The notes beneath the pieces are model-generated. The model did no database searches, had not been told where the DNA came from, and worked only from the letters and a program-made list of their open reading frames with translations. Below, in pieces: positions 1,051 through 53,896 of a stretch of DNA of 64,000 nt (its first letter is position 1; each line of letters starts with the position of its first letter). A program made the translations under genes and the position numbers. This stretch comes from Macrostomum hystrix (Eukaryota > Animalia > Platyhelminthes), in contig CATNEN010000002.1 of the NCBI GenBank assembly GCA_950097015.1, positions 9,052,001-9,116,000 of the forward strand, written 5' to 3'.

Positions 1051-1932
1051 ATAAGTTCTTTGCGTTGTCCTCGCGAGAAAATGTCCAATCAGGGCTTGAA
1101 AATCGACACTTTGAAGGCGCTAATCAGTAGGAGGTAAAAAAACATGAGCAGGGCATTGTAATTGGACACTTTAGTATTGTCTCTGCAGCATCACTCAGAT
1201 CAAAGAGAAAATTGTAAAAGGCCACATTAGAAGGTTAGTAAGATTCAAACTTATCGAATCAGCTAGAACGATTGAGGAAAATTGAGGAAACTAGCTATTT
1301 TTTAGATAAACTACACCAAAATTTACTAGATTATATCACAAAGATAGACCAACCGAAACGCGTCAATATGATAAGTCATGGCTCGAAAATCATGATAATC
1401 TAAAACACAGACTCTCTGGGGATAGAAAGGAATGAGTGGAGAATTTTTATTCGTTATCCTGTAGAGTTGTCAAAGGCACGCTGCGACAGTGTCTTCAAAT
1501 ATTAATACCTCGAAGACCTCAGTAGCTGGAGCAAACCAGCAGCGCCTTCTTGTTCATAGCTCCACCTGACAGTCTTGACAAACCGGTGATTTCTGCAGTG
1601 CTCCACCAAGCCTCGTCCGAACTCCTCCAGGATGTCGTCGACCTGCTGCGGGCTGATCAGTCCGGCGAAGCCCCAGTTCAGCTGCTCGCGCAGGTAAGAA
1701 AACTGGCCGGGAATTTCGAAGGCCAGTCTTGAATGCTGCCAGTGCCAGACTTGATAATTGTAGGGCCTGCCATTGGATCCCATGAAGCTTTCGTTATTTT
1801 TTTGGGCTCCGTGGTCGGCCAGGCCCTGCTCCAGAGCGCTCTGCTCAGGGAAGCGATTGCTTGCAGGCAGGACAATGAAGTACGGCTTGTCGAACGGCAA
1901 AGCACTCCCTTGACTGGACTCGTTCTGCATGT
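1051..1932 (+). repeat. Near-identical segment shared with 17481-18373 (last exon plus about 450 bp of 3' flank of paralogs 1 and 3)
   Basis: GTTGTCCTCGCGAGAAAATGTCC...GGGGATAGAAAGGAATGAGTGGAG...CTCGAAGACCTCAG is read at both positions with few substitutions. Confidence 0.9.
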
Positions 1933-4900
1933 CTACAAGATTGAGGATGCATTTCGTTTCTAGACATTCTGTTTCTTGATGTTGTCATTGTTGTCTTTCA
2001 TGCATACCATTAGCATGTGCTACACTTTTTAAGTTCTGATATACATTTCGAAGCGGATCATGCATGTATATGCACGTCATTCCCATAATTTGCATTCAGA
2101 CTCAGACCTAAGGCTGCCATGTTTCATTAAAAGGCCATTCTCGTGATAAAATTTTGTCAAGAAAATCAACGCGACCGACTCACACTCTTCGAATTTGTTC
2201 ACAAAGCCGCTGCAAATATTGGCTGTGAGAACGCTTGTCATTGTCGCTAGAGGAAGCACTTCGTCAATATCTAAAAACTCGGTCTCGAATACACCTTGAA
2301 TGAAGTTAAATGTGTGAATGCGTCATCGAGTGCTTGCGCAAGCGTCAGTTAAATCAATGAACGTGAACCAAAGGAGCACTGCTGTGTGGCTTGCGAATGC
2401 CATATTAAATTATGAACATCAGCCTATCAACTCACGAAGTTTGGAAAGTGTGTCCTTCAGAGCATCATGCGCGCCTTCGCCAGTGAGTGTTCTCATGGCT
2501 GCCACACAGCAATGTGGTAGGTGCTTGAGACGATCCGGTAGAACTTCGTGGATTTTATTTTCCTCAGCCCCCACAATGATTGCGGAAACGCAGCACTTGC
2601 AGCTTAAATTCATCTAAAACGTCAGATTTGGCTAATTATTATCGGGCAGGGAGAAGTTGACAGGTATTCAGCATCATACGAGGGTCGTGCTTTTAGCGCC
2701 TAACCTAGATGAACCAGTCGTACAATCAGTGGGCAATTGATTTGCCACGCCAGAAGGGGCTCTGGTCGTCTGCCGCGATAAGTGCCGCGGGCGTCGACTC
2801 CCCTAACACGCGCTTTTCCCCACTTACAGTTAGCATAGGACAGACATAAAAATCAGCACGCACCTTTTTAGCAGCGGCTGCAACTTTATGATTCTCGGTG
2901 CCCCTCGTCAAGTCCTCCTGACTCAGCACAAGTAGAATTCTACGGAATTTTCCTGCGTATTGTTCCCATTGATCCTGAGACAGCGATTCGTCCACTGTCG
3001 GAATAAGTTCGTACTTGCCATCGATTATCGAATCCAGTGCCATCTTAAGGGTGTCCGTCTGATCCCTAATGGAGCTGCTTACAGCCACGAGCACATGCGG
3101 ATCTGCGCATTCTATTGAAAGCTTTGATACATTGTCCATTACGCCGAGACTTGCGTCCTTCGCCTGGGCTTGGGCAAAGCAGCTCATGCTTTCAGTTTTC
3201 ATGCATTCTCGCAGACTCTCTTCGCTGGCCACCTCTACCAGCGCCAACCTTGAGCTCATCTCAGTGCTAGTGTAGAGCTCTAGGTTGCTAAAAAACTGCT
3301 TAGAAAAGTTAGGATGGTAGATGATCATTTTCAGCGCCTCCTTGAACTGACTGAACATTTCGTTTTGGACATCAGCAATGTCCTGTCCTTGCGATGCCTC
3401 AACGCTTATGTCTCGCATGGCGAAGATCGGGGAGGCCCAGTCGGCGAAGATGACAGCGTGCGTCTCTCCTGAAGGTGTTCTTTGATGCAGCTTCATCAAG
3501 TAGATGAACACTTTTCTTTGATAGCCAAGGCCATCGAAAGACAAAATCCCAGTTTTCACGCAACCAGGGAACAGGACGTCCGGACTGACGTCTTGACCCA
3601 GTTTGTCCGGAACAAGAACGAAATACTTTTTGAGCACCAGAATTCTTTCAGGTGGCAGTTGAATTTCCACGCTGCTCAGCTTGCTCCCACTGAGATGATC
3701 ACCATCATAGAGAGCTTCTGTGATCTGAGTCTCCAGGTTGGGCACAATGAGACGCAGGAAGGTTGTGGCGAAGTTCCAGGCGAAAGCTTCTCCGGTGCTC
3801 GCATTGCTCATTGGATCTGGAGTTTGGTTTTGAATTGTTGGACATTGTATGCAAGAGTTAGCTCGTAATTGTAGTGTGCAGTAATTCCGTTTCATCGTTT
3901 GAAAAGGCTATTTTTGTCATCGCCACCCTGATAGATTACAACAATGGCAAAGAAATATGAAGTTTTTGTATCTGTTCAGTTTCCATTCAGCTACTCAAAT
4001 TATTTAAGATGTTTAAGAGTGAGTCACATTCAGTTTTTCGTGAATCGGTAAAAAGTTCTAATGGTTGAAAAAATTGGTTTCTATTGAAGGACTAAGAAAG
4101 CAGATGGACAGATTACTATTTTTGTAGAGATGTAGCTGAAAGCCGATACGGAGCGAGAAAATGAATGCATTGAGGAAATGAACCAATTGAACGAAATTTT
4201 TCTTTTTTTCTGTATCTCTTAAAATATTCAACCGATCGCACTGACAATCCTGAACACAATGGCTCTATCCGATGAAACAACTTCCAGAAGCACAAGCCAT
4301 CGGTATCGTTGAGATATTCAAGGATTCTCGTCGGCGTGCAGTCTGCTGGAAAAGCCACCAAAAGAAGCAGAAGTTTTCTGCTTTCTAAACTCCATCATGC
4401 AACCATGTCGGCTATTAATGTTGACTATATTGAATTGATTCTATTGTTAATTTATGCCCCCTTGAACCAATATGGATTCGCCAAAGAGGTTAATACTGAG
4501 CAATGTTATTTGTCCTTGTCTCTAGGTTCTTAGACAAAAATCGCTGAATATATCGACGATGCTGACTCGGACGCCTTTGAAAGTTAGTTAATCGTACAGG
4601 GCGGAAAATTTAGAAGCAAATGGTGGACTTTCACGAAAATCGGTCATTCGGTTTGAGAGCTATCGTGAAGTAGGGAGTGGGTATTTGAAATCCCTTGTGG
4701 TCTTTCCCATGGGGAAAAATAGCATAGTCTTTCTAGTGTTAACGAATGCTCCTGCTAAGCAATTCATAGAATTCGCTACTTCCTCACCGTGAGCACTTTC
4801 GAGGCCGGCCCGGACTGCCGCTACCAAGTCTTCGAGCTTTTCCTGATCATTTGTTCCGGTCAGCTTGACAACGGACCGGAAGTGATCGAGAACTCTCGGG

Positions 4901-6850
4901 TGCTGCAAAAGGTCCCGCGGATTCGCCTCCCCTGGCTGAGTTCGGGAGGCCATGTTGTCCACCGCGTACATCTGAACTCCCCGATTCGATACGCGCTGCA
5001 AAATTATGCACGTGAATGCTGTCATGAGTTCGACAGAATGCAATATCTACATAGGACCAATGAAACTTGTGAATTCTAGCTCCTCAAAAGTTCTCTTGCA
5101 GCTAATACTTCTAGTATCAATAAAGTGGTTACAATTTTATACGTGCCACAAATTGAGCCTGATATGCCGCCAACAGAACAGCCGCAGCTATTGCGCAGCG
5201 CAAATGCCCTGCTGGTCTGTGCCCTCAATTATCCCAGCTGTGCTGACTATGAAATGAATCATATCCCAGCTGTGCTGACTATGAAATGAATCATATCCCA
5301 GCTGTGCTTACTATGAAATGAATCATATCCCAGCTGTGCTGACTATGAAATGAATCATATCCCAGCTGTGCTGACTATGAAATGAATCATATCCCAGCTG
5401 TGCTGACTATGAAATGAATCATATCCCAGCTGTGCTGACTATGAAATGAATCATATCCCAGCTGTGCTGACTATGAAATGAATCATATCCCAGCTGTGCT
5501 GACTATGAAATGAATCATATCCCAGCTGTGCTGACTATGAAATGAATCATATCCCAGCTGTGCTGACTATGAAATGAATCATATCCCAGCTGTGCTGACT
5601 ATGAAATGAATCATATCCCAGCTGTGCTTACTATGAAATGAATCATATCCCAGCTGTGCTGACTATGAAATGAATCATATCCCAGCTGTGCTGACTATGA
5701 AATGAATCATATCCCAGCTGTGCTGACTATGAAATGAATCATATCCCAGCTGTGCTGACTATGAAATGAATCATATCCCAGCTGTGCTGACTATGAAATG
5801 AATCATATCCCAGCTGTGCTGACTATGAAATGAATCATATCCCAGCTGTGCTGACTATGAAATGAATCATATCCCAGCTGTGCTGACTATGAAATGAATC
5901 ATATCCCAGCTGTGCTGACTATGAAATGAATCATATCCCAGCTGTGCTGACTATGAAATGAATCATATCCCAGCTGTGCTGACTATGAAATGAATCATAT
6001 CCCAGCTGTGCTGACTATGAAATGAATCATATCCTAGCTGTGCTGACTATGAAATGAATCATATCCCAGCTGTGCTGACTATGAAATGAATCATATCCCA
6101 GCTGTGCTGACTATGAAATGAATCATATCCCAGCTGTGCTGACTATGAAATGAATCATATCCCAGCTGTGCTGACTATGAAATGAATCATATCCCAGCTA
6201 TGCTGACTATGAAATGAATCATATCCCAGCTGTGCTGACTATGAAATGAATCATATCCCAGCTGTGCTGACTATGAAATGAATCATATCCCAGCTGTGCT
6301 GACTATGAAATGAATCATATCCCAGCTGTGCTGACTATGAAATGAATCATATTCCAGCTGTGCTGACTATGAAATGAATCATATCCCAGCTGTGCTGACT
6401 ATGAAATGAATCATAGCCCAGCTGTGCTGACTATGAAATGAATCATATCCCAGTTGTGCTGACTATGAAATGAATCATATCCCAGCTGTGCTGACTATTA
6501 AAAGTACAAAAAATGGTATTCAGCAGTTCCTGCTTCCGCAGGCCTTACCCGCTTCATCGTCAGTAGCAGGAGGGGCTGCAAGTACACCACAGGCTTTATG
6601 TTGAACAGAATCACAATGGCATCAGATCTATACACCAGCTGCACAACGCTTGCCCAGTCATTCAGGTTCTCATGACTTTCGACCTGAACTAGTCGGTCCT
6701 CCTCTGTGTCACTTCTGGCTGGAACTAAATCTTCAAAGGCTCTTTCCATTGCGTCTTTCAACACTCTGCTGGCATTGTTGGCTCCTCCGACCACTACCAA
6801 AGCGGCGGTGAGGGCTTGGTAGTTCCCGTAGCCAACATAGTCACTAGGTA
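1502..6850 (-). CDS. TIR-STING-TIR-STING-like paralog 1. Exons 6850-6549, 4995-4788, 3816-2864, 2613-2436, 2294-2184, 1932-1502; start exon not resolved.
   Basis: All junctions are GT-AG with consistent phases (0,1,0,1,1) and an open frame of about 728 codons. STING-like motifs: GEAFAWNFATTFLRLIVP, YFVLVP, GYQRKV, FADWASP (domain 1); VLTANICSGFV, YFIVLP, GSNGRPYNYQVW, AFEIPGQ (domain 2). Two beta/alpha x5 TIR-like segments flank domain 1. Confidence 0.85.
5231..6498. repeat. 32-bp minisatellite (ATCCCAGCTGTGCTGACTATGAAATGAATCAT), about 40 copies, intronic in paralog 1
   Basis: Near-perfect tandem periodicity read directly. Confidence 0.97.
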
Positions 6851-8737: not shown

Positions 8738-11700
8738 TCACTGCAACCTCGAAGACCTCAGCAGCTGGAGCAAACCAGCAGCGCCTTCTAGTTCGCCGCT
8801 CCACCGGACAGTCTTGACAAAGCGATAGTTTCTGCAGTCTTCCTCCAGGCCTCTTCCGAACTCCTCCAGGATGTCGTCGACCTGCTGCGGGCTGATCAGT
8901 CCGGAGAAGCCCCAGTTCAGCTGCTCGCGCAGGTAAGAAAACTGAACTGGAATCATAAATGCCAGTCTTGAATCCTGCCAGTGCCAGACTTGATAATTGT
9001 AGGGCCTGCCATTGGATCCCAGGAAGCTTTCGTCCTTTTTCTGGGCTCCGAGGTCAGACAGTCTCTGCTCCAGAGCGCTCTGCTCAGGGAAGCGATTGTT
9101 GGCAGGCAGGACCATGAAGTACGGCTTGTCGAACAGCAAAGCACTCCCTTGATTGGACTCGTTCTGGATGTCTGCAAGATTGAGGTATGTTTCTAAACAT
9201 GTTTCTTGACGTCAGGCATACCATCGGCAGGTCTACACTTGTATGGTCAGATAAACTTTTAGAATTGCTAGGACCATCTCTCTATCTATTTGCAGGGGGG
9301 CCCGGGGCACTTGCCGCACAAGCGACAGAGCGGCACGCCCCCAGACCGGCGAACTAGGCGCTTAGCGCCCATCGCACCGCCTCCCCTGAGCAGGCACCAC
9401 ACACAGCAGCACAGACCAGCCGGGGAGGGCAGGAGGCACCCAGAATAGGCAGCAGTGCCCCACCCAGCTCCACACGCACAGAGCAGACCAAGCCGGGGCG
9501 GAAGGCTGATATGAAATCAGTCCTCAGGGGGGCCGGGTGATGAGTGTACACTTATCCAATCGCGCTGACGGAAATCCAGAAAGCGCGCGGCGGTGTACAC
9601 CCCCCACAAGGTGTACACCCCCCACAAGGTCTCACGCCCCAGCGCCAACGCACACAACTCACACAAAGCAGAACAGGCACACAGAAAGGTAGGAGTGAAG
9701 CTATTATTTCAAGCTTTGATTGCACGAAATATGGCGTACCTCCGCCGGTCGCTACTGTCCAAACCCTTCAACAAGTCCCGAAATTAATCGTGACTTGAAG
9801 GGAGAATCGAACTAGCGTCCATTGGAGTGCGAGGCAGCGACGCTAGCCGCTGACCCACTCGTCCCCCTCCAGGTAGGACCATGTACTAGAGGTAAAAAAG
9901 TTCACTTTTCCTGTCTCTTAAGTATGGAAAATTGAGTTCTGTGTTAGTAAATATAACTTTTAATTACGAGGGCATCTATTCAGTCTCTTGTCTCTCTCCT
10001 GCAGAGCCGCATCAGAATGAAAAATGCTCGGGAAGAAATATTTGAAATAAAATTTTAATTGGTAAATCAGCTAAGCGATTCAAACAACAGATTAATGAAG
10101 TATTAAAATACAAATAGAATAACATTAGAATATTAGAATATATATTAGAATACACTCGGAGCGCAACGCATATGTGCAGGCTTGCTTTCTTACACTCGGT
10201 TAACTGGCTCACGAAGTCATAGATGACATTGGCTATAAGAACTTGGCCCATTGAAATGAGCGGAAAATGGTCCTCAAATTTGAGGCACTCCATCTCGGCG
10301 AGGTCTGCAAAAAGATAAATGCAGTCGTTTTGAAAATAAGCGCAACGCTATCGTTGACACAAAACGATTTTCCAGATAACAAACAAGCCGCGTCTTAAAC
10401 TCAGCCTGTCCAGAACTGTTTAGGCATTTGAAATTGATCAAGGCAGAAAAAGGACCAAATCTCAATGGGTTTAGAGAGTGATAGACTATTCAGAACATGG
10501 TTTCGATTCGCTTACAAACAAACAATATTTTACTGCTCTCTAGCTTACGAAGGCCATCGAGGACGTCGCCAAGAGTGCGCAGCTGCTGTCCGAATGGCAG
10601 CCTGCCTTCAACGTTGTCGCCAGTCAGATTTCGCACGGCTGCCACACAACAATAGGGCAGGTGCCTCAGCCGATCCGGCAGAACTTCGTGAACGGCTTCA
10701 ATCCCAACTCCAAGGTCTCCCACAATGATCACGAAGACGCAGCACTCACCGCTTGAATTCATCTAAATTGTCAGTTTTTGGCTGATTTTGTTGGGAATGG
10801 AAAAATTGATAGATGATAGATGCTCAGTACTAGCCTGAACCGAATGGGCTCGATGCATAAGCAGAGTCAAAGGCAATGTTCTGGCGTAGTGCCTTCGGCT
10901 TTCAGCTTATGTACATTAGGAGCTGCTAATGCTGGTTCCCATTCCCCGAAAATGGAAATGAAAAGTCATCCGTCTTGAAATATAACTGCTCATTTTCCTA
11001 ATTTCTTTCGAACTCCAGACTTCTCAACTAGGAGCTCCAGGACCTACGGCCCGCGTCTGTGGGTCGGTGGCAGAGCGGTTAACGCGTTTTGCCTTTCGCG
11101 CCAAGGTCCCTGAGCTCATTCCGCGGCGGGGCTAAATTTATTTGGGGCGCAGCCGCGAAGTGAAGGCTTGGGGGCTTGTTTACGCCCTTGAAGGCCAACC
11201 TCCAGGGCACAGTAAAAATGTACACTGCCTGACGATGAGAAAGTCAGGGCCGATGTACACAACTGTGTGAGCGTGTGCCTGCGTTTGGTATCTGGGTGCG
11301 TCTGTGCTCAGGAGTCAGCGAAAAGGGGCAGAATTGCATCTTCGCAGGCTGCGGGTCTAGTGTCACCTACTCGTAATGTGGCATCGCCGCAGCCTTCCTG
11401 CCGTTGTTTTGATTATTATTATCTACGGCCCTTGTCTAAAGTCTCCCAACATTGGCTTCTGTGGGCACGCAAGAATGGGGAGGGCGGGTGATCTCACTGA
11501 GTGGCAGGATGCCCACCCAGTGCCCTGTGTTTCTTGCTAACCTCTTAAAGCTTGTATAGAACAGCCACAAAATTAGCTCGTACCTTTTCAGCAGCGGCCA
11601 GAACTTCGTACCTTGATTCGTCCCCCTGTAAGTCATCCAGACTCAGCACAAGTAGAATTTTGCGGAATATATTTGCACATTCTCGAAACAGCCGTTCGTC

Positions 11701-13477
11701 AGCTGCCAGCAGTTTGTACCTCCCTTTGAGTCTCGAATTCAGAGCAATTTTCAGAGTGTCAGTTTGATCCCTTATGGCGCTGCCCATAACTACGAGCACA
11801 TGCGGATCTTCACATTCTATTGAAAGCTTTGACAAATTGCCCATTACGACGCGACTCGCATCCAAAGTCTGGGATTCCTCCTCTATACGATTTCGTAGAC
11901 TCTCTTCGCTGGCCACCTCTACCAGCTTCAACCTTGAGCTCAGCTCAGTGCTGGTGTAGAGCTCTGGATTACTAAAAAGCAGCTTAGAAAAGCTAGGATG
12001 GTAGATGATCATTTTCAGCGCCTCCTTGAACTGACTGAACATTTCCTCTCTGACTTCAGCAATGTCCAGTCCTTGCGATGCTTCAACGCTCATGTCTCGC
12101 ATGAGAAAGATCGGGGAGGCCCAGTCAGCGAAGATGACAGCGTGCGTCTCTCCTGAAGGTGTTCTTTGATGCAGCCTCATCAAGTAGATGAACACTTTTC
12201 TTTGATAGCCAAGGCCATCGAAATACAAAATCCCAGTTTTCACGCAACCAGGGAACAGGACGTCCGGACTGACGTCTTGACCCAGTCTGTCCGGAGCAAG
12301 CACGAAATACTTTTTGAGCACCAGAATTCTTTCAGGTGGCAGTTGAATTCCCACGCTGCTCAGCTTGCTCTCACTGAGATGATCGCCATCATAGAGAGCT
12401 TCTGTGATCCGAGTCTCCAGGTTGGGCACAATGAAACGCAGGAAGGTTGTGGCGAAGTTCCAGGCGAAAGCTTCTCCGGTGCTCGCATTGCTGTTTTGCA
12501 CTGCAATGATTGTTTACTTGATTTTGAAATTTTCATAGTCGATAACCACCCTTTTGTCAGCTAGGTTGAGGTTGTGTAAGGACTGCCTGGTATTGTACGT
12601 AATTAACAGTGACTTTCACCTTGAGGTTGCATGAGACCAAGGATCACTGTGCTTGCCAAGTGTCCGAGCTGGCTCCTGAGATCATTCTCTCCCCTCAGCT
12701 TGACTACGGACTGGAAGAGGCTGCGAACTCGCGGATGTTGCAAAAGGTCGTACGGACTGTCTTCGACATTGTCCACTAAGTGTGTCGGCAATCCTCTGTT
12801 TTCCATGCCCTGTACAAATTAAATATAATTGGAGGAAATTTAAGGCTTAGGCAATTATTGAACATAAGCCATTTAGGAGATTGCAAAACGCATTGATTGA
12901 ACCCTGGACCCATTACTCATTTAAACAGGCACATGAAATAGTGCAACCAGCTTTGGGGGGAATTCGGATGAAAAAGGCTAATCTGATTGTAAGCTGCCAC
13001 CCTTTATGACGAGGCCTCCGGTAAAATGGCCCAGCTACTGCTCTGGTTTTAAATGTAGTGTAATGTGACCAGCATGATAGAATTGCATTACCCGCTTCAT
13101 CGTCAGCAGAAGGATGCGTCGTGTGACATCTGCTCGCTTTTCGTTGAAGAAAAGTACAAGGACGGCAGAGGAGAGCACTTTTGGCACCAAGCTTCCAGTC
13201 CAGTCATCCAGGTTATTTCGGATGTTGACCACATGCATTCGGGTGGGATCTAATTCTCTGGTGATGGCCTCATTTAAAACACTGCTGGCTTGGTTGGCTG
13301 CTCCGATCTCAATAATAGTGACTGATCGGCGTTGGCTGTCCAAGTCTAAAAGGAAAGAAGGTAGCAATGAAGGAAACATTTTTGTGTTAAACAGTCTACG
13401 AAATGCTTGTACACAACTGATTGCATTCAATCAATGGTACCTTCTGGAGGTTGAAACACAGAACGCGGTCTGTCCAT
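8738..13477 (-). CDS. TIR-STING-TIR-STING-like paralog 2. Exons 13477-13441 (candidate ATG exon), 13345-13092, 12809-12620, 12500-11584, 10762-10549, 10304-10194, 9171-8738; about 718 aa.
   Basis: Same exon and phase structure as paralog 1. Summed exon length is 2157 nt (719 codons including stop) with no internal stop. Same STING-like motifs. The first exon is less certain. Confidence 0.85.
9330..9867 (-). mobile_element. tRNA-derived SINE-like element; related copy at about 54385-54750
   Basis: Minus-strand head TGGGTCAGCGGCTAG...GTTCGATTCT resembles Pol III A and B boxes. The head and the CCGGCGAACTAGGCG tail motif recur at 54.4-54.75 kb. Confidence 0.6.
11050..11240 (+). mobile_element. 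Probable tRNA-derived SINE fragment in an intron of paralog 2
   Basis: GGTGGCAGAGCGGTTAACGCG (A-box-like) followed by a degenerate B-box region; GC-rich island within AT-rich intron. Confidence 0.4.
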
Positions 13478-41900: not shown

Positions 41901-44900
41901 AGGAATTTCTCAAGCTGGAAGCTTTAATACATATATACTTGCTTTAGCAATAGCTTCACTTTCACTCTTTGAAAAGCTTCACTGTATAGTATTTTTTGAG
42001 AAATTATGAAACAAAAGAGTCCAAATAAGAATGTATTGTTAAAATTAAGTTTGCTTTTATTATTATTAACCTTTTTATCCCACCACTTTGCTAATCAGAC
42101 ACAGACTAAGAAAAGAAGAGAGAAGGGCCGCCAGCTCACAAAGCGACTGGTCACAGAGGGCGCCGGCGTGCGTGAAGAGGACGTAAACGCCAAGGCTCCG
42201 CTACTCGGCAACGACCTGCAATCGGCTGCTGGCAGCTTAGCGAGCAGAATTAACTGCGCCGCCAGTGAGTGCATTATTGTTAAATAAGCTTTGTGAATTG
42301 AGATTTTGATGAATTGTGACCTCAGTGAATTTCGTCAATTTGGCCAAGTGAATCAGGACCTCAGGGAGTCAGGACATAAGGGAATCGAAACCTGTATGCT
42401 TGTATGCCAAGTCGCAGTGTCGGTGCTATAAAGAAAGTAGCACCGACTTTCTATATTATATTTTTTTAATATAATGGGTGCAGAGGCTATAACAATTATA
42501 TAAATACATTATCAAATATGACACCGTTTTTTAGCTGCCGACGGCGGTATTCGCAGAAAGCCAGCCACTACCGCATCCGCAAAAGCCAAAGCCAAGCCGT
42601 GCCGGTGGCAGAAAACAACCGACGCTTCGGTGGCTGGTCCGAAGGCGAAACGGCCGAGTGCCGGCGCCGTTCTGCCTGAGAATGCTGCTGCTGGCGCCGT
42701 TCTGCCTGAGAATGCTGCTGCTGGCGCCGTTCTGCCTGAGAATGCTGCTGCTGGCGCCGTTCTGCCTGAGAATGCTGCTGCTGGCGCCGTTCTGCCTGAG
42801 AATGCTGCTGCTGGCGCCGTTCTGCCTGAGAATGCTGCTGCCGGCGCCGTTCTGCCTGAGAATGCTGCTGCTGGCGACTTTCTCGACAGCTTGACAAATC
42901 TGTCGTTCTCTTCTTCGCTGGCAGATTTTAACCAAGAGCTGCTTGAGGAATTGTACAGCTCGGCTGCGGGCTCCTCTGGCGTCGCTGGCGCTGATCTGCC
43001 CGCGGAGTCGGCTGCGGGCTCCTCTGGCGTCGCTGGCGCTGATCTGCCCACGGAGTCGGCTGCAGGCTCCTCTGGCGTCGCTGGCGCTGATCTGCCCGCG
43101 GAGTCGGCTGCGGGCTCCTCTGGCGTCGCTGGCGCTGATCTGCCCACGGAGTCGGCTGCGGGCTCCTCTGGCGTCGCTGGCGCTGATCTGCCCGCGGAGT
43201 CGGTTGCGGGCTCCTCTGGCGTCGCTGGCGCTGATCTGCCCACGGAGTCGGCTGCGGGCTCCTCTGGCGTCGCTGGCGCTGATTTGCCCGCGGAGTCGGT
43301 TGCGGGCTCCTCTGGCGTCGCTGGCGCTGATCTACCCGCGGAGTCGGCTGCGGGCGCAACCCGCAAAAGGCGGCTGCCACCAGCTGCCGACCAATCCTGC
43401 AAACGGCAGAAACTGGAGCCTGGCACGCTGGTGCTAGGGTACTGGCCGACCAATGGCGAATGTTGGTGGCCAGCAATGGTTTGTCTGCCACGACGCGGTT
43501 CGAGATGCACAAGAGGAGTGAGCATGATACATGTGCATGTGCAATTTTTCGACGCCCCACCGTCAAGTGCGTGGTTGCACCAGTGGCGGTTCGTGGAAAA
43601 TTCAATGGCAGCACCACGAGGCGCATCACAAGAGCTGAGAGAAGCCTTCGAGCAAATGGCAGCTGCTTCAAAAATAAGTGCTGAAGACCGTATTGACAGA
43701 TTCCTGAACTCTGTGTAACTTTCTACGCTTAATTAGGCCAAAAAACGAAGGCAGCAGATTCTGATCGATTCAAAGAGGGTGATTATAGGAAGACAGTTCT
43801 AGGAGAGTGATCGAAAGCAGATTGGGCAAGCTCAATTTAATGCATAGCAGCGGTGCCAACACCTGTGCTGCGCGGTTTTTTCTCTGTTGCACTTTTTCTG
43901 CGCTTTTGTACTATTTCAACATGCTATTAAAACTATTTTCTAACTTGTGAAACATGTCAATATAATATAATATTTGAAACTTGTAACTGAAAATTCGTAT
44001 GCACATAAAATATAATTTGAAAATGTGAAAATAAAGTAAATAATAAATTTATATATATAACTGAAATAGCTGGACTTGTGTCTAATACAATTGACCTCAA
44101 ACCCTTTAAAGCTGCGACCGAAATATTTTCCCATTTCTACTATTAGTAGCTTATAATGCAAAATTTACAGTTTCTTTGCAAAACTTTTATGTGTCATATT
44201 TCGAAATATTCTGGTCGGATATATTTTTTTGGAGTGTCATATCTGTGATGTGGCCTGTCGGGTATCCCCTACGATGTGCGTCATTTCTTTGTTTCGTGTC
44301 ATCACCGCTAACATAGGGGCTGAAGGGTAAAAGGAGTGAGGACGGGTCAGAGGGAAAGAGCTGGAAAGGACGGGTGAGGAAAGAGAGACGAACAGCTAGC
44401 CAATCAGAGACGAGGGAGCGGAAAGAGAGTTGAAGGTTTGCTAAGAAGTCGAAAGAAAGAGGGAGAGAGGAGAAAGTACAATAGGAGGGGCGAGCGTAAA
44501 CAACCACAGAGTGGAAGTGGAAGAGAGGAAGGATAAGAGTCCTGACTGTTATTTAAATGCTGCGATGCGAACCAAAGCTTGTGAAGAAAAAGCGCACCTG
44601 GTACTGGTCCGGCAAGCTTTGTAGCAGCAAAAATGTTCCACATCATTTTGGTTATTAACCAGTGCTCCTGCTACGCAATTGATAGAATTAGTATTCTCAC
44701 CTTGAGCACCTTCGATGCCGGCCCGGACTTCCGCTACCAAGCTTTCGAACTTTTTTTGATCATCTTCTTTGGTCAGCTTCACAACGGACCGGATGTGGTC
44801 GAGAACTTTCGGGTGCTGCAGAAGGTCAAGCGGATTTGTCTCTCCTGCCTGAGTTCGGGAAGCCATGTTGTCCACAACGTACACTTGAACTCCTCTGGTC

Positions 44901-46243
44901 GATACGCGCTGGAAATTTAATTTCTGAATATTAGTTCCTTAACAGTTCCCAAATAATACTAACCTTAATGTTAATAAGAAAAGGCAATCATAATTCATTT
45001 TGCGTGCCCTAAATTAGGCCAGACATTCCGTTAACAGCACAGCTGCAGCTATGGCGCGACGCGTCTGAAGGCTCCACCCTTAAATATCCCAGACATCCAA
45101 GCAATCCCAGAGTGCAAGCTATCACAGACATCCAAGCAATCCCAGAGTGCAAGCTATCACAGACATCCAAGCAATCCCAGAGTGCAAGCTATCACAGACA
45201 TCCCAGCTATTCCAGCTATCCCAGCTATCTCGGCTATCCCAGCAATCTAAGCAATCAAAGCTATCCAAGCTATCCAAGCTATTCGAGCTATCAGCAATCC
45301 TAGCTATCCCAGCTATTTCAGCAATCCCAGCTATCCCAGCTATCAGCAATCCTAGCTATTCCTGCTATTCCAGCTATCTCGGCTATCCCAGCAATCTAAG
45401 CAATCATAGCTATCCAAGCTATCCAAGCTATCCAAGCTATTCGAGCTATCAGCAATCCTAGCTATCCCAGCTATCAGCAATCCTAGCTATCCCAGCTATC
45501 AGCAATCCCAGCTATCCCAGCTATCCCAGCTATCCCAGCTATTCCAGCAATCCAAGCTATTTCAGCAATTCCAGCTATCCCAGCTATCCCAGCTATGCCG
45601 ATGTCCAATCAGCAGCTGTCTGAACTCAAGCAGTGAAGAGTTGAGTGTCTTGCTAGAAGCCAAATTTTGTTGCATTGAAGTCGGGAATCCAACTGTTTAA
45701 GGCGAGAGTCCGAAGCCGTAACCGATATTCTTAAAGCCCCTTCAACAGCCACAGCAAATATTGCAGCTAAGAAACTAATCATCGCGGTAGATGATGGCCC
45801 TTTGAAAATTGCCAGGATTTTGTATTTTTATGTCTACTGCTTTATAGTGCGACACAATTTGATGAGCGGAAGGTGAGATCACCCAGTGTGAAAATACTAA
45901 AATTTTAGGCATCCAGCAGTTCCTGCTCCCGGAGGCATTACCCGCTTCATCGTCAGTAGCAGGAGAGGCTGAACATACACCGCTGGCTTCTGGTTGAACA
46001 GAATCACAATGGCATCAGAGTTGTACACCAGCTCCACAACACTAGCCCAGTCCTTCAGGTTGTCGTGTCGGCTGACATTAACAATGCGATCCTCGACCTT
46101 TGAGTCGCCCCTAGCGGAAACTACATATCTGAAGCCATTTTTCATTTCGTCTTCCAATTTTCTGCTGGCATCGTTGGCTCCTCCGACCACAATCAAAGCG
46201 ACGTTGACTGTGCGGTAGTCACCGACGTCACCGTCAATAAGTA
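17934..46243 (-). CDS. TIR-STING-TIR-STING-like paralog 3. Exons 46243-45942, 44908-44701, 24973-24042, 23630-23417, 23273-23163, 18373-17934; introns inflated by a 19.7-kb region and a Gypsy element.
   Basis: Exons are homologous to paralogs 1 and 2, in the correct order, with intact splice sites and compatible phases (about 736 codons). Joining 44701 to 24973 is inferred from paralog structure. Confidence 0.75.
18731..23157 (-). mobile_element. Full-length Ty3/Gypsy LTR retrotransposon (Mag-like by gag/pol layout); 289-bp LTRs at 18731-19019 and 22869-23157; TSD CTCAC
   Basis: The two LTRs read as identical and have TG...CA ends. 5-bp direct repeat at 18726-18730 and 23158-23162. Polypurine tract GAAGGGGGGAGA lies next to the 3' LTR. 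Confidence 0.97.
19017..22868 (-). CDS. Gag-Pol polyprotein (about 1283 aa from the first ATG after the LTR)
   Basis: Zinc knuckle CTTCNKKNHYAAVC, protease VDTGAD, reverse transcriptase YQDD, RNase H TDAS, integrase HPG...CHTC and D,D(35)E-like region, in Gypsy domain order. Confidence 0.95.
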   Translation of the reverse strand: MASQASELNLEDPDTAEAWLLSFAAAARTKKLKDSEEEHQITDLFLSRAGLKALRTLTLMAAPDSLETKTFAQIRDIIDATIRPKRRLTIAERVKFLSLRQDPSEGVASYYRRLRAAAASCSFEKLGSKQTCEDELITMRLVDGLASVDHKRRLLERMQGIDMLLTDVLQELEQLEQIRYYNAGTGPTVTTESSIAYAGRRAAPPQLPPDTRSPRHTTRTKCQYCGGSHQQGSCPAFGKRCTTCNKKNHYAAVCRSRTVHLETWEEDDDAAPKPDAANVFVIRPENKERKGIFRRVKINGKELQMQVDTGADVSLIPRGHWEMLGRPALRKSKRILRQFDGSIIKTLGEFTATWNDKDKFRTVDLVVTAAHKSHGLLGLDNLDWNSERQTVGGQGTAVQHLNCLKGFQARIKLIEGAKPFYCAARAVPLHLRDRVNQELKRLQAEGIIEPVTEGGSEWASPIVCVLKPNGNIRICADYKAGVNHQVCGDTYPMPTVETIFSDVAGMTDFATLDLSDAYLQIELEEKSREVTTIATPLGLFRYTRLVPGLKSASAIFQKAMETTLEEVNGKVIYQDDILLGGRSSEDLKAKVDEVIKILQAAGMNINLAKSNLGAKSVKFLGYRIGAEGISPDPGLVSKIKEITAPRDRRQLESFLGLCNFFGRFVNNYAHIVEPLNQLRKKGVEFTWTTSQEAAFHQLKKLLSSSPIIQPYDRTKETTLTTDASEKAVAAVLTQEGHPVIYFSRRLTEAETRYSNIEREALAIVWSMERSRQFLLGKRFTLRTDHRPLEFLFGARQQLPKVANARILRWAIRLMGFDFAIEYARGVDIPHADALSRLDFADVPDDPYEAAPQQHLVHWAGESVIGWTELAEETKRDRLLADITRRIAGNRWSGCSPAERQFKAIRHALTLDGSVVCYGDRPVIPASLRSRVLELVHSGAHPGATSTRALVRNSVWWPGYCGDVEGFVRACHTCAKQRQSSHSSVHQWPAESEPWGRVHMDHAHVPKVGLLLILVDAMSAWPEAIRVPDKSAATVRRVLQEVFARNGVPRTLVSDNAAEFHDEGLVSWLHRIGCRAVKTPPYHLQSNGLAERMVQTIKVASAGWDQQEPYDAFLARILLNYRCVPHAGREFSPAQLMGRQLRNPITMKTAIRSEVWYAPTPSATPEKAEFLAQKGSNTALIMRQGDRVTLAHLDQLRRHEAGGNGDVATAAVSHEVAPRPADLPEARHENMPASLTQASAPGETADPPPAASGRVPSPAATPQRPSYNLRANRGVPPERFEGGR
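26087..26382. repeat. 32-bp minisatellite (CTTGTGTTTTGTATCCTTCCAGTTTAGCAGCC), about 9 copies
   Basis: Direct tandem periodicity. Confidence 0.93.
26830..27185. repeat. 18-bp degenerate minisatellite (GTGAGTGAGGCTGTGAAT)n
   Basis: Direct periodicity; gives the spurious VNVSEA / FTASLT ORFs. Confidence 0.9.
27201..37940. repeat. 116-bp satellite, 75 units in blocks of 15, 6, 49 and 5, separated by three near-identical 696-bp spacers (28929-29624, 30309-31004, 36677-37372)
   Basis: ORF track recurs every 116 bp; spacers all begin AAGGGCTACTCAATG and end CACAGCGCTTAAG. Confidence 0.97.
38375..43718 (+). CDS. 5-exon gene of about 1072 aa: C2H2-like zinc fingers, tyrosine-recombinase-like domain, low-complexity repeats, C-terminal PWWP. 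Exons 38375-38497, 39642-40927, 41399-41858, 42099-42264, 42535-43718.
   Basis: GT-AG junctions with phases 0,2,0,1 give 3219 nt in one frame. Motifs CPFGDC..HIKRAH, CEICG..HRRNSH, NANRQGVASACKIS, VSKFRE, ADHQNHTEGVQRRFY, and LVLGYWPTNGECWWPAMV...HVQFFDAPPSSAWL. Confidence 0.75.
38533..39610. repeat. 19-bp minisatellite (CTGCCCTGTCTCTACCACA)n filling intron 1 of the recombinase-PWWP gene
   Basis: Direct periodicity, bounded by GTAAGT (38498) and CAG (39639-39641). Confidence 0.95.
40944..41358. repeat. 19-bp minisatellite (GTGGCACTTAGATTTTGAA)n filling intron 2 of the recombinase-PWWP gene
   Basis: Direct periodicity, bounded by GTGAGT (40928) and CAG (41396-41398). Confidence 0.95.
45085..45600. 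repeat. Degenerate (CTATCCCAG)-based repeat, preceded by three 35-bp units, intronic in paralog 3
   Basis: Direct reading of the sequence. Confidence 0.85.
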
Positions 46244-47823: not shown

Positions 47824-48855
47824 AAAAGGTTAACTCCTAATCACCAGGTGATCAAACTACTCGTGCAATTAGTGCCTCTGTAATTGTCTCCAAACACAGA
47901 AGTGATTTATAGAAAAACTTAATCCATACATTCCTCCTATTAGCGACTTAGAAAACACACTTCAATATTGGACAAAAGTTCTAGAAAAAACTAGGATTGA
48001 AAGCTAGTTTACAGATGTCTGATTACAGTAGGTCGAAGTCCTACCAAATGGTTCAACAGCAGCAGCTGACTGAAAAAGGTGCTAGGAGTTGATGAACTTG
48101 ATGTAGGCTTGAGCGATGATTCCTGAACTTCCGAGATAAAATCGCTAAATTGATGATTCGAGTATATTTAATTTGGATAGTAGATCACCTACAGTGGATT
48201 TAGATTCAATCAAATTTAATAAATACGAGCACTCATTTAGGAAAAACATAGATACCTTAGGTAGATTAAACCCAGTAAAATTCTGCAAAATACGAGTGGT
48301 ACATGCAAAACTACTGGCTACTTTTGTGAGGGTCAGTTAGCTCATTGGAATAGGGAGATACAAAAAACCAAAAAGGACGAAAACATCTCAGCGATTCCGG
48401 AAAAAAGTAGCATGCTTCACATAAGCAAGCACATTTGGCATAAAATGGGTGAAAACGTATTCAGCTCTATTGTGCCCAGCACAATCAACGTGAAAATTAT
48501 GAATTGAGTTTTAAATATCGTGAAATATAAACTTACTTCGAAAACCAACTTCAAACTCTTTCTTGACTCACTAACGCTTGTTGATATTTAAATGGTCAAC
48601 GTCAACGCAGTTTAGTTAAGAAAGTAAATATATTTTTTAACGATGACCATTGCTGCTAAAATTAAAATGATTTCTAAGCATCACCGATTACTAAAAGATC
48701 TCACATTCATTAAAAAATTCGATAAATGGCACTTGATTCGCTGAAAAAGTAAATTAGAAAGCCATGCATATCGGCCGCCCTCATGGCAGAAATCTATATA
48801 GCACAGAGTCAGATTAGTTTAGATGAGTGACTCATAGTCTCAGGCTCTAAATAAT

Positions 48856-51800
48856 TCAGATTGGCATCAGTTTATCACTCAGTAGCTGAAGCAGTTGCCC
48901 TGCCTGACTTTTCTGAAAATATACCTCCGCCTCGGATTCTTGTGAAAAGTCGGAGCGGCAGTCCCAGTCGACTGTCGCCACTTGCTGCTTGTTTCTGCAG
49001 TGCTCTTTCAAGCCTTTTCCGAACTCTTGGAGAAGGCCGTCGATGTGCTGCGTAGTGACCAGTCCGGCGAAGCCCCAGTCCAGCTGCTCGCGCAGGTAGG
49101 AGAACTGGCCTGGGATCTCAAAGGCCAGTCGTTTGGATTTCCAGTGCCAAACTTTGTAGTTGTAGGGCCTGCCATTCGAGTTAAACTCCTCGTCTCTGCG
49201 CTCTGCTCCTGCTTCCCCCAAGCGCTGCTCCAGATTCGTCTGTTCAGGAAAGCATTTGTTACTAGGCAGCACCAGAAAGTACGGCGGGTCGAATGGCAGT
49301 TCTCTGCCTTCACTAAATTCTTCCCGCGCATCTGCAATTTGCGCAAGCTCACAGCTATAGAAGTACCACGGACATCATGACCAGCATGCACTTTTAATCA
49401 AGTAATTGTGAGTCAAGTCAAGACCAAGCGTCCAGTGAGAACGACTTCAAAAGAAAGACAATAATGGCCAGATAAGCCGCAAAGAAATGAAAAGACGAAG
49501 TAGAAAGAAGAAAATACGAAAATTTACGCTCAAGCTGATCGAAAAATGGGCGGACGACCTGCGCATTAAAATTAATCCAGCGAAGATGGAGTGCTGTCTG
49601 TTTTTGCGGGACCGCGCTGACCGCCTCCGTAAACTCAACCTCTCCTTGCTGGACCAACTGATCCCGACCAAGGCCGAGCTGAAGTTCCTGGGGATCTGGA
49701 TGTCCTCCTCTTTGACAAGCAAGTCAACTGCATCAAAGAAACAATTCACAGTCGGGCGGCTGTCCTCCGGCTTAGCCGACCACGAATGGGGCTGTGACCG
49801 CGCCCTGTAGCTCCGGATTTACAAGGCGCTGGTAGAAGCTGTCGTCTGGCACGCGGCCGCTGCTTGGACACCCTGGTTGTCCGCAACCCACCTGTCTGAA
49901 CTTGACCGGGCCCAACGTGAGTCGCTTCGCATCATCACCGGGTTACCGAACCGAAATCAGCGCCTATTGGCACCATCTACATGGAGGCTGGAGTCTCACC
50001 TATCAGCTTGGAAGCCCGCCGCCGTTTGTTGCTCTCCTTCGACAAACGCTCGCCGCGGATCGCCGCGGCCCGCCCGATGACCCGTTTCGAGTGGTCTGCA
50101 AGTTGTGGCTCGATATCCGCCTGACTGCCAACAAGGGGCTCAGTGAACAGGCCTGTACCAGCTGCAGCAGTATGATTCCTGCACCGAGATCCTGCACTGA
50201 GATTGCGTGGGAACTGAGCAATATGCAGGACTGGCTTAATGTATTTAACCTGTTCTGACGCAACGGTCACTTCCCTGGCTCCTGGAAACAAGCAATGAAC
50301 TCACGAACTGAGATCTCTCAAGACCAGACTGAGATTCCCTCAAGACCAGAACTGATATATCGGTTGCCGTCGGCCAAGGAGCGCATCTGATACCACATCA
50401 AATACCGATCCGCTTTGTAGGGTCTCCTTGCCGAAGTGAAACGCGACTAAATCCTCTTGCTAAAGACAAACGGCGGCAACAGTCACTAATCTATCAAACC
50501 AATCCGGAATCGACCGTCTTGAATCCACTTCGACAATTTATAAATCGACAATCGAAATCGCTCGGGCAGCCGAGCAGCCGACAGAGCAATTTCACACCCT
50601 CACTTGTCCCAGGCTCAACACAGCAATTTCACACCCTCACTTGTCCCATGCTCGGCACAGCAATTTCACACCCTCACTTGTCCCAGGCTCGGCACAGAAA
50701 TTTCACACCCTCACTTGTCCCAGGCTCGGCACAGAAATTTCACACCCTCACTTGTCCCAGGCTCGGCACAGCAATTTCACACCCTCACTTGTCCCAGGCT
50801 TGGCACTACGAGACGCCCCATCAGCTTCACTTGCCTGAAGAAAACAGCACGCTGTGGCAGGTTTGGCTTGATAAAACCTGCTATCCCATCGGACCATAAT
50901 AAAAATAATCGCAGTAGGGATGCGGGCAATGGCACATCATTTGGTGATGATTTCCGTGCTGCCCCGAGGAACTTCAAACGAGCAGTCCACAGGGCCGAGG
51001 AAAGTAAGTGGCGACAATTCTGCGACGAATTGGACAAAGACAAGCCCACTTCTAGGCAAGTTCTAACGCTTACTATGGACAAGACGTCCAAACTTGCCAT
51101 CATAAAAAATGAGGATGGCACTTAAACTAACGAACAGCAGGAGGTGCTCAAGCGCCGGGCAGTTTCTTCCCTCCGATTCCCACCGCCAAACAACTCGCTG
51201 GAAGGCGCCAACTTGGCGGCGAGCATCATAAAAGAGGACCTTTGCTCGCGCAGTTAGGACCATCAAACCCTTCAAGTCTCCTGGACCGGACGGCATCTAC
51301 TCAATCATCCTTCGTGAGGTGGCGAAGATCCAGAAGTTCCGGAGTATTACCTGCAACCTTATGCGGGTATCTATTCAGTTGGAGTTCGTGCCCAGATGCT
51401 GGACTAACGCTCGCATTGTCTTCATACCCAAGCCGGGGAAAGGAGACTACCAGAGTGACAGTCTTCCAGCCAATCAGCTTGGCCTCCTTTCTGCTAAAAT
51501 ACAAAACATAAAATGACTCTGACCTACTGGTGCAAGATTAGTGGCATAGTGTTAAGCCAGTGAGTTAAATATGACTCACGTTCTTCCATTTTGTCCACAA
51601 ATCCGCAGCAGATGTTTGCGGTCAGCACACTGGCCATAGACATTATAGGAAAGACGTCTTCAATAGAGAGGCAGTTCTCATCAAGACCTAAAAATAGACA
51701 TGGATTTGTTTTTCACTGTTCTGTTGCATAAGATTAAAGCCGAAATAACTTACGAAGGCCAGAAATAAGATCATTAAGATTGTTATGCGGTAGTCTGTAC

Positions 51801-53896
51801 GGCAGCCTGCCTCCAACATTTCCTTCAGAAAGTGCTCTCACCGACGCCACACAACAATATGGTAGGTGTTTTAGGCGATCAGGCAGGATCTGGTGAATCG
51901 CTTCCAACTCAACTTCAATATCTCCCACAATAACAGCGGAGACGCAGCACCGACCAGTTTCGTTCATCTAGTGTGTCATGTGTTTGTATTTTTATGCAAG
52001 TTTGTAGCTAGTTATTAATCTAATTTACCAAGTGGACTCTGAAAAGAGTGAGTCATTATTAAAAAAGCAAAATGCTAAGTACGAGTACAATACCTTTTTA
52101 GCAGCCAACTTGATATCCTCAGTTTCATCGGCGTGTCGAAGTTCCTGAGCACGGACCACTAGCAGAATTCTGTCACATTTATTGATGTACTCTGACATGC
52201 TTTCTTGAGGTTCCAACAGTTTGTATCGGAGTTTTGAGTTTCTTTGTAGGGCATTCTGAACTGCGGAAGAATCCCGCTCGTCCATTGAGTCGCCCATCTT
52301 TACTAGCAGATGAGGTTCGCTTTCTTCAGACGTGCTTGTTTGGATGCTTAACTGAGCGAATGGCAAGGCGTCGTGCGTTAAACGCGAGCAGTTTTCCACC
52401 TCCCTTTCCAGGCGCTGTCGCAGGCTGTCACCATCGCTCACCTCGAGTACTTCCACATTTGAGCTCCAATTGGGACGATCTCCGCCCACATCAAGCCCAC
52501 TGCTGAAAAGCAGCTTGGGAAAGCTTGCGTGGTTCAGGATCAGCTTTAGAGCGACCTTGAACTGCTGGAAGATTTTCTCGTTGGTTTCTGGAACTTCTTG
52601 TCCTTGTTCCATTTTTTTAATGGCAAAAACTGGAGAGGCCCAGTCTCCAAAGATGATGGCGTGAGTGGCGTGAACTGCCACGTCCTCGCTCAAATCCATG
52701 AGGTACACAAAAACTTTTCTCTGATAGCCCAGGCCTTCAAACTTTAGCAGACTTTTTTTCTCGCAGCCGTGAAATAGTTTGTCCATATCAATATTTTGGT
52801 CAAGTTTTTCCGGAACTAGTATGAAATATTTGTTTACTACTATGATGTTTTCACGGGCTACATGAATTCTGTTGCCGTTGAGTTTGCTTTGACTGAGCAT
52901 ATTTCCGACTTGTAGAGTGGCCCTAATGCACTCATCTAATTTAGGCAAAATGAGGCGCAGGAAAGTGAACGCAAAGTTCCAAGCGAAAGCTTCTCCGATG
53001 CCTTCGTAGCTCTTTCGGTCTGCAGTTTTGCGGAAAAGCTATTTTTTATTTACAGAACTAACTACCAAGGTACAGTGACACATGTAGTGTACACCACCTG
53101 TGGAGTCCTCACTAATGCCTCCATGGTGTTTCACCTTTGCCATACTGTACATTAGCTAGCAAAAACCGCAAGCCGCAGTTCAAATCCTTAAACACAGCCC
53201 AGTATTCTAGACCAGCTAAAGGCCAGCCAACATCTAAAGCTAGGCCGAAGTGAAAAAGCATTCCTCCTTCTGTGGGACTCACCTATATCCTTGGACATGA
53301 GACCCTCCTTTACATCCGCTGCCAAGCGTTTGAGCTGGCTGCGATCGCCTTCTCCAGTCAGCTTGAGCACCTTTTGGAAGAGGTCGCGAACTCGCGGATG
53401 CTGCAGAAGGTCGAGCGGGTTCGTCACCCCAGACTCAGTTCGAGGTAAAAAGTTGTCCACGAAGTACACACGAACGCCTGTGGAGGACACGCGCTGCGGA
53501 ACGGGTTTTAAAGAGTGGGATCGTGTATTTCCTTATACTCGTGCCTTAGTACTTTTAATACAACTGTTTTGATCTTGCAAAAATAATTAAAGATGCGTTG
53601 AGCCCAGGCAATAGCTACCCGCTGCATTGTCAGCAGTGTGAGAGGCCGGACTGTCAGCGGTGGCTTCTTGTTAAAAACAAGCACAGCGGCATCGCAGCCG
53701 AGCACCTTCTGCACTACGCTTTTCCAATCGTCCATGTTCTCTTCACTTTCGACCTCAACTCGGCGGTCCTCCTCTGTGTCGCTGTTGGCGGGAACTCCAT
53801 CTTCGAAGACGGCCCTCAGGTCCTCCTTCAGAGCTGTGCTGGCATCGCTGGCTCCTCCAACAACAATCAGAGCTACTCTGACGTGTTTCTCGAGCT
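48856..53896 (-). CDS. TIR-STING-TIR-STING-like paralog 4 (most divergent). Exons 53896-53619, 53493-53283, 53019-52094, 51967-51754, 51687-51580, 49331-48856; start exon not resolved.
   Basis: Same exon and phase pattern, open frame of about 738 codons. Motifs GEAFAWNFAFTFLRLILP, GLGYQRKVFVYL, IFGDWASP, NGRPYNYKVW, AFEIPGQ. Confidence 0.85.
49480..51490 (+). mobile_element. Degraded non-LTR retrotransposon (LINE) reverse-transcriptase fragments in an intron of paralog 4
   Basis: Broken frames: KWADDLRIKINPAKMECCLF...LKFLGIWM and RIYKALV...LDRAQRESLRIITG (RT C-terminal part); KRAVHRAEESKWRQFC, KPFKSPGPDGI and WTNARIVFIPKPGK (RT N-terminal part). Confidence 0.8.
50585..50800. repeat. 37-bp minisatellite (CAGCAATTTCACACCCTCACTTGTCCCAGGCTCGGCA), about 6 copies
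   Basis: Direct periodicity. Confidence 0.9.

Follow-up and report, generated by a model that had tools for sequence, protein, structure and literature searches.

Analysis of a 64,000-nucleotide stretch of the Macrostomum hystrix genome (contig CATNEN010000002.1, positions 9,052,001 to 9,116,000; hereafter the window; ~45% G+C) revealed a tandem array of four paralogous minus-strand genes, named A to D, whose predicted products carry two STING-type domains on one polypeptide. The domain order is alpha/beta (TIR-like), STING domain 1 (STING1), alpha/beta (TIR-like), STING domain 2 (STING2) in all four genes and in the Macrostomum lignano homolog PAA63807.1. Each chain therefore holds two unlike alpha/beta-STING modules, unlike the single-module TIR-STING receptors. 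We are highly confident of this architecture and of the STING identity of the domains.

Exons were found by comparing all stop-to-stop open reading frames (ORFs) of the window pairwise, and splice boundaries were then read base by base. The all-against-all comparison showed six minus-strand exon families with four paralogous copies each, and every exon copy has canonical GT-AG donors and acceptors at equivalent positions. Splicing gave four ORFs of 727, 706, 735 and 737 codons for genes A, B, C and D. Intron phases are equal in all four genes (1 into the first identified exon, then 0, 1, 0, 1, 1). An earlier sequence-only reading of this DNA had proposed four diverging paralogs in tandem, with identical exon and phase layout and open frames, between 1502 and 53896, and the splice models bear this out. 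The span is exact, 1502 being the last base of the gene A stop codon and 53896 the first base of the first identified exon of gene D. As judged from their DNA, the four loci are real, intact, spliced genes of predicted soluble proteins of roughly 730-760 residues. Their features are as follows.

Gene A, 1502..6850, minus strand: 727 codons from the first identified exon, from the GT-AG splice model and exon paralogy.
Gene A exons, minus strand: 6850-6549, 4995-4788, 3816-2864, 2613-2436, 2294-2184 and 1932-1502, with the stop codon at 1504-1502.
Gene A alpha/beta domain 1 (TIR-like), 4788..6850, minus strand: exons 6850-6549 and 4995-4788, colinear with residues 1-130 of the M. lignano homolog.
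Gene A STING domain 1, 3173..3816, minus strand: first ~214 codons of the large exon, from Pfam STING_LBD, PDB profile and BLASTP matches.
Gene A alpha/beta domain 2 (TIR-like), 2436..3172, minus strand: last ~100 codons of the large exon (to 2864) and exon 2613-2436, aligned with residues 370-525 of the homolog.
Gene A STING domain 2, 1502..2294, minus strand: first helix in exon 2294-2184 and remainder in 1932-1502, from BLASTP to the homolog and from fold.
Gene B, 8738..13345, minus strand: 706 codons.
Gene B exons, minus strand: 13345-13092, 12809-12620, 12500-11584, 10762-10549, 10304-10194 and 9171-8738.
Gene C, 17934..46243, minus strand: 735 codons.
Gene C exons, minus strand: 46243-45942, 44908-44701, 24973-24042, 23630-23417, 23273-23163 and 18373-17934.
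Gene D, 48856..53896, minus strand: 737 codons.
Gene D exons, minus strand: 53896-53619, 53493-53283, 53019-52094, 51967-51754, 51687-51580 and 49331-48856.

A single stop-free exon of 305-317 codons holds STING1 together with the first half of alpha/beta domain 2. Since the two share one exon, the two halves of the protein, as judged from the DNA, cannot be separate genes. A reading as separate genes, which the sequence-only reading had named as a refutation, thus fails at the DNA level and was set aside because the junction of the halves sits within that exon. The halves are likewise joined in one of the M. lignano relatives described below (PAA82216.1), which has both STING domains in one exon. 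Two STING-type and two alpha/beta domains are thus fused in one frame, as the sequence-only reading had proposed. A hydropathy scan of the window proteins detected no four-helix transmembrane domain; their most hydrophobic 19-residue stretches (Kyte-Doolittle score 1.65-1.92) all lie in predicted strands or helices of the alpha/beta and STING domains, in agreement with the proposed lack of a hydrophobic membrane segment.

A HMMER search with the large exon of gene A against 1.84 billion representative proteins revealed three clusters only, all of uncharacterised proteins from Macrostomum lignano, which is the lineage restriction expected from the sequence-only reading. The three relatives are PAA63807.1 (P0005; 712 aa, amino acids), PAA82216.1 (P0002; 582 aa) and PAA82218.1 (P0003; 927 aa, partial). 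A word-indexed search with P0005 returned its own cluster only. In UniRef, some M. lignano homologs are automatically named "Stimulator of interferon genes protein" or "SEFIR domain-containing protein". The M. lignano proteins share with the window family the STING1 and STING2 types, colinearity over the whole length, intron positions and phases and the tandem arrangement, but show only 26-37% identity to the window proteins. In a full-length alignment P0005 is colinear with the window proteins end to end. P0002 is without the middle alpha/beta domain, its two STING domains being joined by a short linker, and P0003 has extra N-terminal sequence that aligns to nothing in the window proteins. 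The M. lignano genes form a tandem of their own.

M. lignano locus L001:10001-25298: two full copies and a partial third (17048-18376) in tandem, with a 28-base first exon.

Because the whole build is conserved between the window species and M. lignano, the doubling predates their split.

Sequence searches with STING1 identified it as a STING domain. Pfam STING_LBD (PF15009) matched gene A with E 4.9e-4 and gene B with E 5.4e-5 (19.9-23.1 bits, under the 27-bit curated cut-off), and genes C and D alone gave no Pfam match at E<=0.01. A seven-sequence family profile searched against PDB matched 154 distinct sequences with a best E of 5.8e-5; 60 of 60 among the matches listed are STING, led by the oyster and sea-anemone proteins. 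Its alignments cover two motifs of STING1, that of the first helix and that of the EYATP type. A BLASTP comparison linked STING1 of gene A to residues 137-338 of P0005 (E 4e-30). Pocket positions of both STING domains are given in human STING numbering. In the profile alignment, STING1 of the window genes has Phe at the Tyr167 position and D-W-A-S-P for E-Y-A-T-P, with an acidic residue and Ser at the Glu260 and Thr263 positions.

The second STING-type domain was recognised by its fold. Superposition of P0005 model residues 538-711 on human STING 154-337 gave Z 11.1-11.3 and a root mean square deviation of 2.7-3.0 A over 149-157 aligned residues; STINGs of coral, oyster, choanoflagellates and bacteria match this region with Z 9-10. 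A Foldseek search with the P0005 model gave at least 175 hits at E<=1e-3, and 50 of 50 among the matches listed are STING with probability 1.00. The last exon of gene A is linked to residues 559-680 of P0005 by BLASTP (E 2e-14; 28% identity). As modelled, the second STING-type domain is a complete STING ligand-binding fold, and the sequence-only reading was right to place a second STING-like domain here. STING2 shows 20 invariant columns across the paralogs of two species, including the G-R of the presumed lid strand and an A-F-x-x-P stretch. Phe stands at the Tyr167 position, Pro264 is kept and G-R-x-Y/F is invariant; the register of the lid strand is our own reading. We take G-R-x-Y/F to correspond to Arg238/Tyr240 and the Pro of A-F-x-x-P to be that of the EYATP motif.

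Models of the M. lignano homolog gave both alpha/beta domains five beta-alpha units in a flavodoxin-like fold. The best fold matches of domain 1 (model predicted local distance difference test score, pLDDT, about 60) are the TIR domains of SIGIRR (Z 11.6), Cat1 (11.3), RPS4/RRS1 (11.2) and SPARTA (10.8). Domain 2 (P0005 residues 370-525), folded alone with AF2, reached pLDDT 83 and a predicted template modelling score (pTM) of 0.76. It matches the TIR domains of Cat1 (Z 10.5), RPS4/RRS1 (9.6), bacterial TIR-STING (9.4) and oyster TIR-STING (8.1), as well as SEFIR (8.6-8.7). The oyster TIR-STING structure also aligns over alpha/beta domain 1 together with STING1 (289 residues, Z 10.3). Alpha/beta domain 2 of the window proteins was found in P0005 with E 3e-5, and its alignment shows a conserved D-L after the third strand.

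Several observations weigh against this reading of the proteins. The gene models are known from DNA alone. The protein that was folded is full-length P0005, not the window proteins themselves, and its model is mediocre (mean pLDDT 57.5, pTM 0.53), with STING cores at about 75 and 80; short alpha/beta exon fragments were excluded from the alignment used for folding, as they were misplaced when aligned to the full-length homolog. Comparison with PF15009 recovered only the first of the two proposed STING domains, below the curated cut-off in genes A and B. For STING2, profile searches revealed no STING match at E<=1 against PDB and no Pfam match at E<=10. Alpha/beta domain 1 of the window proteins gave two weak colinear matches to P0005 (E about 0.3); among the four genes, this domain is most diverged in gene B. 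No TIR, TIR_2 or SEFIR match was detected for either alpha/beta domain in Pfam (E<=10), with the PDB profile (E<=10) or in PADLOC (E<=1). Non-TIR folds follow closely for domain 1 (B12-binding domain, Z 10.4; CheY receivers, 9-10) and are interleaved for domain 2 (GTPase, 9.4; CheY, 9.3). In addition, a start exon was not located for genes A to D, and gene C may be impaired by its insertions, both described below.

The points on the alpha/beta domains bear on an alternative in which these are another flavodoxin-like module (receiver-like, SEFIR-like or new) with an output other than TIR-type NAD+ cleavage or scaffolding. Besides the missing TIR and SEFIR profile matches, Foldseek gave nothing at E<=1e-3 for domain 2, and the Z scores of CheY, GTPase and decarboxylase-wing domains (9.0-10.4) overlap those of TIR (9.4-11.6), whose margin over other flavodoxin-like folds is about one unit or less for both domains. 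Yet TIR ranks first for each domain independently and is the most frequent family in both match lists, which include the TIR parts of the bacterial and oyster TIR-STING proteins, and the location directly upstream of STING mirrors known TIR-STING proteins. We consider the alternative rather unlikely, while giving it more weight than any of those discussed below. Of the TIR-like domains proposed from the sequence, a flavodoxin-like fold therefore stands, with TIR as narrowly best match for both, and the family assignment by profile does not; given the models, "TIR-like" is the best label, and TIR membership is not established.

The proposed description of the protein as internally doubled holds for its architecture. 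As a statement on duplication it does not, for profile-profile comparison showed no sequence trace between the paired domains: hhalign of STING1 with STING2 gave a probability of 0.1, and the comparison of alpha/beta domains 1 and 2 gave 0.4. An origin by duplication of a TIR-STING unit can therefore not be stated.

Whole-gene ratios of nonsynonymous to synonymous substitution rates (dN/dS) are 0.33-0.62 across the four genes, which shows estimated selection on the array to be purifying but relaxed. Gene D is the oldest branch, with dS about 1.0-1.3 to genes A, B and C. Among the latter three, the STING1 part and the last exon have dS 0.08-0.22, and the alpha/beta exons and the exon of the STING2 first helix 0.3-1.6. 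STING1 dN/dS among these genes reaches 0.7-0.85 at low dS, and STING2 dN/dS is 0.28-0.62. Genes A and C are 95% identical over 925 bases (1047-1960 and 17477-18401), comprising the last exon and ~450 bases of 3' flank, and far more diverged in their alpha/beta exons (dS 0.3-1.1). This mosaic divergence suggests that the STING parts underwent gene conversion or that the alpha/beta parts were shuffled.

Taken as a whole, we favour the following explanation with some confidence. The protein would be a cytosolic receptor for cyclic dinucleotides, probably the products of cGAS-like enzymes. Within a chain, the first helices of the two unlike STING domains would join these as a pseudo-heterodimer that has one asymmetric pocket, and ligand binding would drive assembly of the TIR-like domains, leading to signalling or NAD+ cleavage. 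The parts of this scheme differ in strength. A role as an immune nucleotide sensor is likely. Pairing of STING1 with STING2 within the chain has a nearly even chance of being correct, and a TIR-type output is somewhat more doubtful than that. The full form, in which a single-chain pseudo-heterodimeric STING has one pocket tuned to asymmetric nucleotide signals and two TIR-like domains as built-in effector, as the STING counterpart of the CARF-to-SAVED transition, is put forward tentatively.

STING is known to act as a strictly symmetric homodimer, with one cyclic dinucleotide bound where the two subunits meet. As STING domains bind cyclic dinucleotides as dimers, two of them on one chain would most simply pair with each other. 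The single-chain pseudo-dimer with an intramolecular ligand pocket and a pre-paired TIR duo, suggested in the sequence-only reading, has the standing of a hypothesis. Further hints at such pairing are that P0002 lacks the middle domain and connects its STING domains by a short linker only, that both unlike STING types are conserved across species, and that STING1 and STING2 keep different pocket residues, having in common a Phe where human STING has Tyr167 and the EYATP Pro. In several rows of the structural alignment, model residues 136-138, which precede the first helix of STING1, align together with STING2 onto the connector region of human STING, as judged from the range ends only. In the model this placement would agree with two first helices that begin next to each other, in the manner of a dimer, and is no more than a hint.

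The STING domains might instead pair between chains (STING1-STING1' and STING2-STING2') or in open head-to-tail polymers, with two symmetric pockets per dimer. All solved STINGs among the listed entries are homodimers, a domain of ~150 residues lies between the STING domains in most family members, and a pTM of 0.53 gives no firm packing. The short STING-STING linker of P0002, however, favours pairing within the chain, and although the two STING types have diverged so far that sequence no longer relates them, each is conserved across species, a pattern that would be expected if they form non-equivalent halves of one site. We regard interchain pairing as unlikely.

It is less probable still that STING1 alone binds ligand and that STING2 is a degenerate STING fold serving as scaffold, autoinhibitory cap or partner-binding module. 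Such a role would agree with the failure of STING2 to match any STING profile and with our reading that the equivalents of Glu260 and Thr263 are not kept in it. Against it stand the 20 columns invariant across the paralogs of two species, with G-R and A-F-x-x-P among them, the STING2 dN/dS values given above and a modelled fold that spans the whole ligand-binding domain.

At the 5' end, the first identified exon opens in phase 1, and a short upstream coding exon with the ATG must therefore exist. In the M. lignano relative the opening exon is 28 bases long (ATG plus 25 bases), has a phase-1 donor and lies 127 bases upstream of the counterpart of that first identified exon, and the positions of the next two introns are shared between the M. 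lignano gene and the window genes. Nucleotide-level comparison of the four upstream regions in the window revealed intron-proximal similarity only and no conserved block. A scan for ATG with a phase-1 donor gave candidates at 7350-7278 (A), 46888-46822 (C) and 54832-54745 (D), which show no mutual alignment and are unverified; window positions 1-1500 contain no counterpart of the candidate start mini-exons. The Macrostomum spliced leader ends in ATG. As a start for gene A, this ATG would be out of frame when joined to the first-exon acceptor by our own reading of the sequence, and it was rejected. The full-length M. lignano proteins open immediately with strand one of the N-terminal domain, which makes it unlikely that the window genes hide a membrane domain.

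Gene C spans 28 kb. Satellite DNA fills its second intron of 19.7 kb, which also holds several other tandem repeats, and the last intron carries an intact gypsy element.

Ty3/gypsy long terminal repeat (LTR) retrotransposon, 18728..23157, minus strand, same orientation as gene C: LTRs at 18728-19019 and 22866-23157.
116-base satellite array, 27183..37941, no strand: 98% matches, inside the 19.7-kb intron of gene C.

The gypsy LTRs have 292 bases each and are 100% identical, and the ORF of the element (1293 codons, 19017-22898) encodes protease, reverse transcriptase, RNase H and integrase; it looks like a very recent insertion. The element inserted five bases past the exon with a 5-base target duplication, GTGAG (23162-23158 and 18727-18723), and through this duplication the splice donor of the gene C exon was kept. 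The satellite array is broken three times by an identical ~680-base insert (28930-29606, 30310-30986 and 36678-37354). The coding exons of gene C are intact, and ORF comparison revealed no further copies of the missing exon types flanking the large intron at either end. That the array consists of decaying pseudogenes, or that the models wrongly merge separate genes, is very improbable: the start exon was not found, the models derive from DNA, gene C holds large insertions and STING1 dN/dS among A, B and C is raised, though at low dS, but four frames of 706-737 codons are open over six exons each, a domain junction lies within a single exon, dN/dS is <1 throughout and the M. lignano annotation contains full-length colinear proteins.

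Other ORFs and repeats were seen within and between the genes. Plus-strand ORFs at 38300-43720 are nested, in antisense, in the large intron of gene C, and one of them (42630-43718) encodes a PWWP domain (E 2.8e-5). Long plus-strand ORFs between 38.3 and 40.9 kb overlap 19- and 21-base tandem repeats, have no Pfam match and were set aside. About 20 copies of a 64-base tandem repeat (5230-6502; 98-99% identical) lie in the gene A intron that separates its first and second identified exons. Between genes B and C lies a minus-strand ORF (14649-15188) with a weak match to a QRICH1 domain (E 1.3e-3, below cut-off).

A search of the full-text literature turned up neither a chain that carries two STING domains nor a report of STING in Macrostomum. 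The claim of novelty made from the sequence thus holds for the literature searched; homologs are already present in the public M. lignano annotation, where they are uncharacterised. As STING2 is invisible to sequence profiles, domain catalogues would overlook such proteins or record them with one STING domain. In the main survey of eukaryotic STING architectures, the only types listed are transmembrane STING (TM-STING) and rare TIR-STING (PMC10732462). Flatworms have been described, based on Schistosoma, as having lost cGAS and STING (PMC4117786), a study of planarians found none (PMC13563047), and most platyhelminths have been described as being without cGAS-like receptors (cGLRs; bioRxiv 10.1101/2023.02.22.529553). 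It is clear that macrostomids have retained STING-type receptors, which form expanded tandem arrays, and this affects the statement that flatworms lost STING. If our explanation is true, the existence in nature of a chain with two different STING domains would mean that the receptor can evolve an asymmetric single-chain pocket, and the window family would be a ready-made test case for the diversification of ligand specificity. Macrostomum is a laboratory model with RNA interference and transgenesis.

Among known systems, canonical membrane STING (human STING1/TMEM173 and the sea anemone, fly and coral proteins) has the same ligand-binding fold as both STING domains of the window family, and its helix motif and EYATP-type motif align with those of window STING1. 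The window proteins differ from it in having no four-helix membrane domain, no C-terminal signalling tail and two STING domains per chain. In bacterial TIR-STING, ligand drives the formation of filaments, switching on the TIR NADase. The bacterial TIR-STING proteins of the cyclic oligonucleotide-based antiphage signalling system (CBASS; SfSTING 7UN8; 9LMQ) have the same domain order, and their TIR and STING parts are both structural matches, but they consist of a single module, and the window proteins match no PADLOC defence model. The best sequence matches of STING1 are animal STINGs and there is therefore no sign of recent transfer from bacteria. The oyster Crassostrea gigas TIR-STING (PDB 6WT7) is, like the window proteins, soluble and of animal origin, with a TIR-type domain directly upstream of STING; its match to alpha/beta domain 2 (Z 8.1) is at 18% identity. 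It differs in having one module per chain, in forming a homodimer and in a TIR domain that is recognisable by sequence, whereas the window family has two unlike modules and no TIR sequence signature. In SAVED, found in CBASS and CRISPR effectors, a CARF homodimer sensor became a single-chain fusion of two diverged copies that reads asymmetric cyclic oligonucleotides. SAVED is an analogy only: its fold is unrelated, and the pseudo-dimer, which is proven for SAVED, is inferred for the STING-STING chain.

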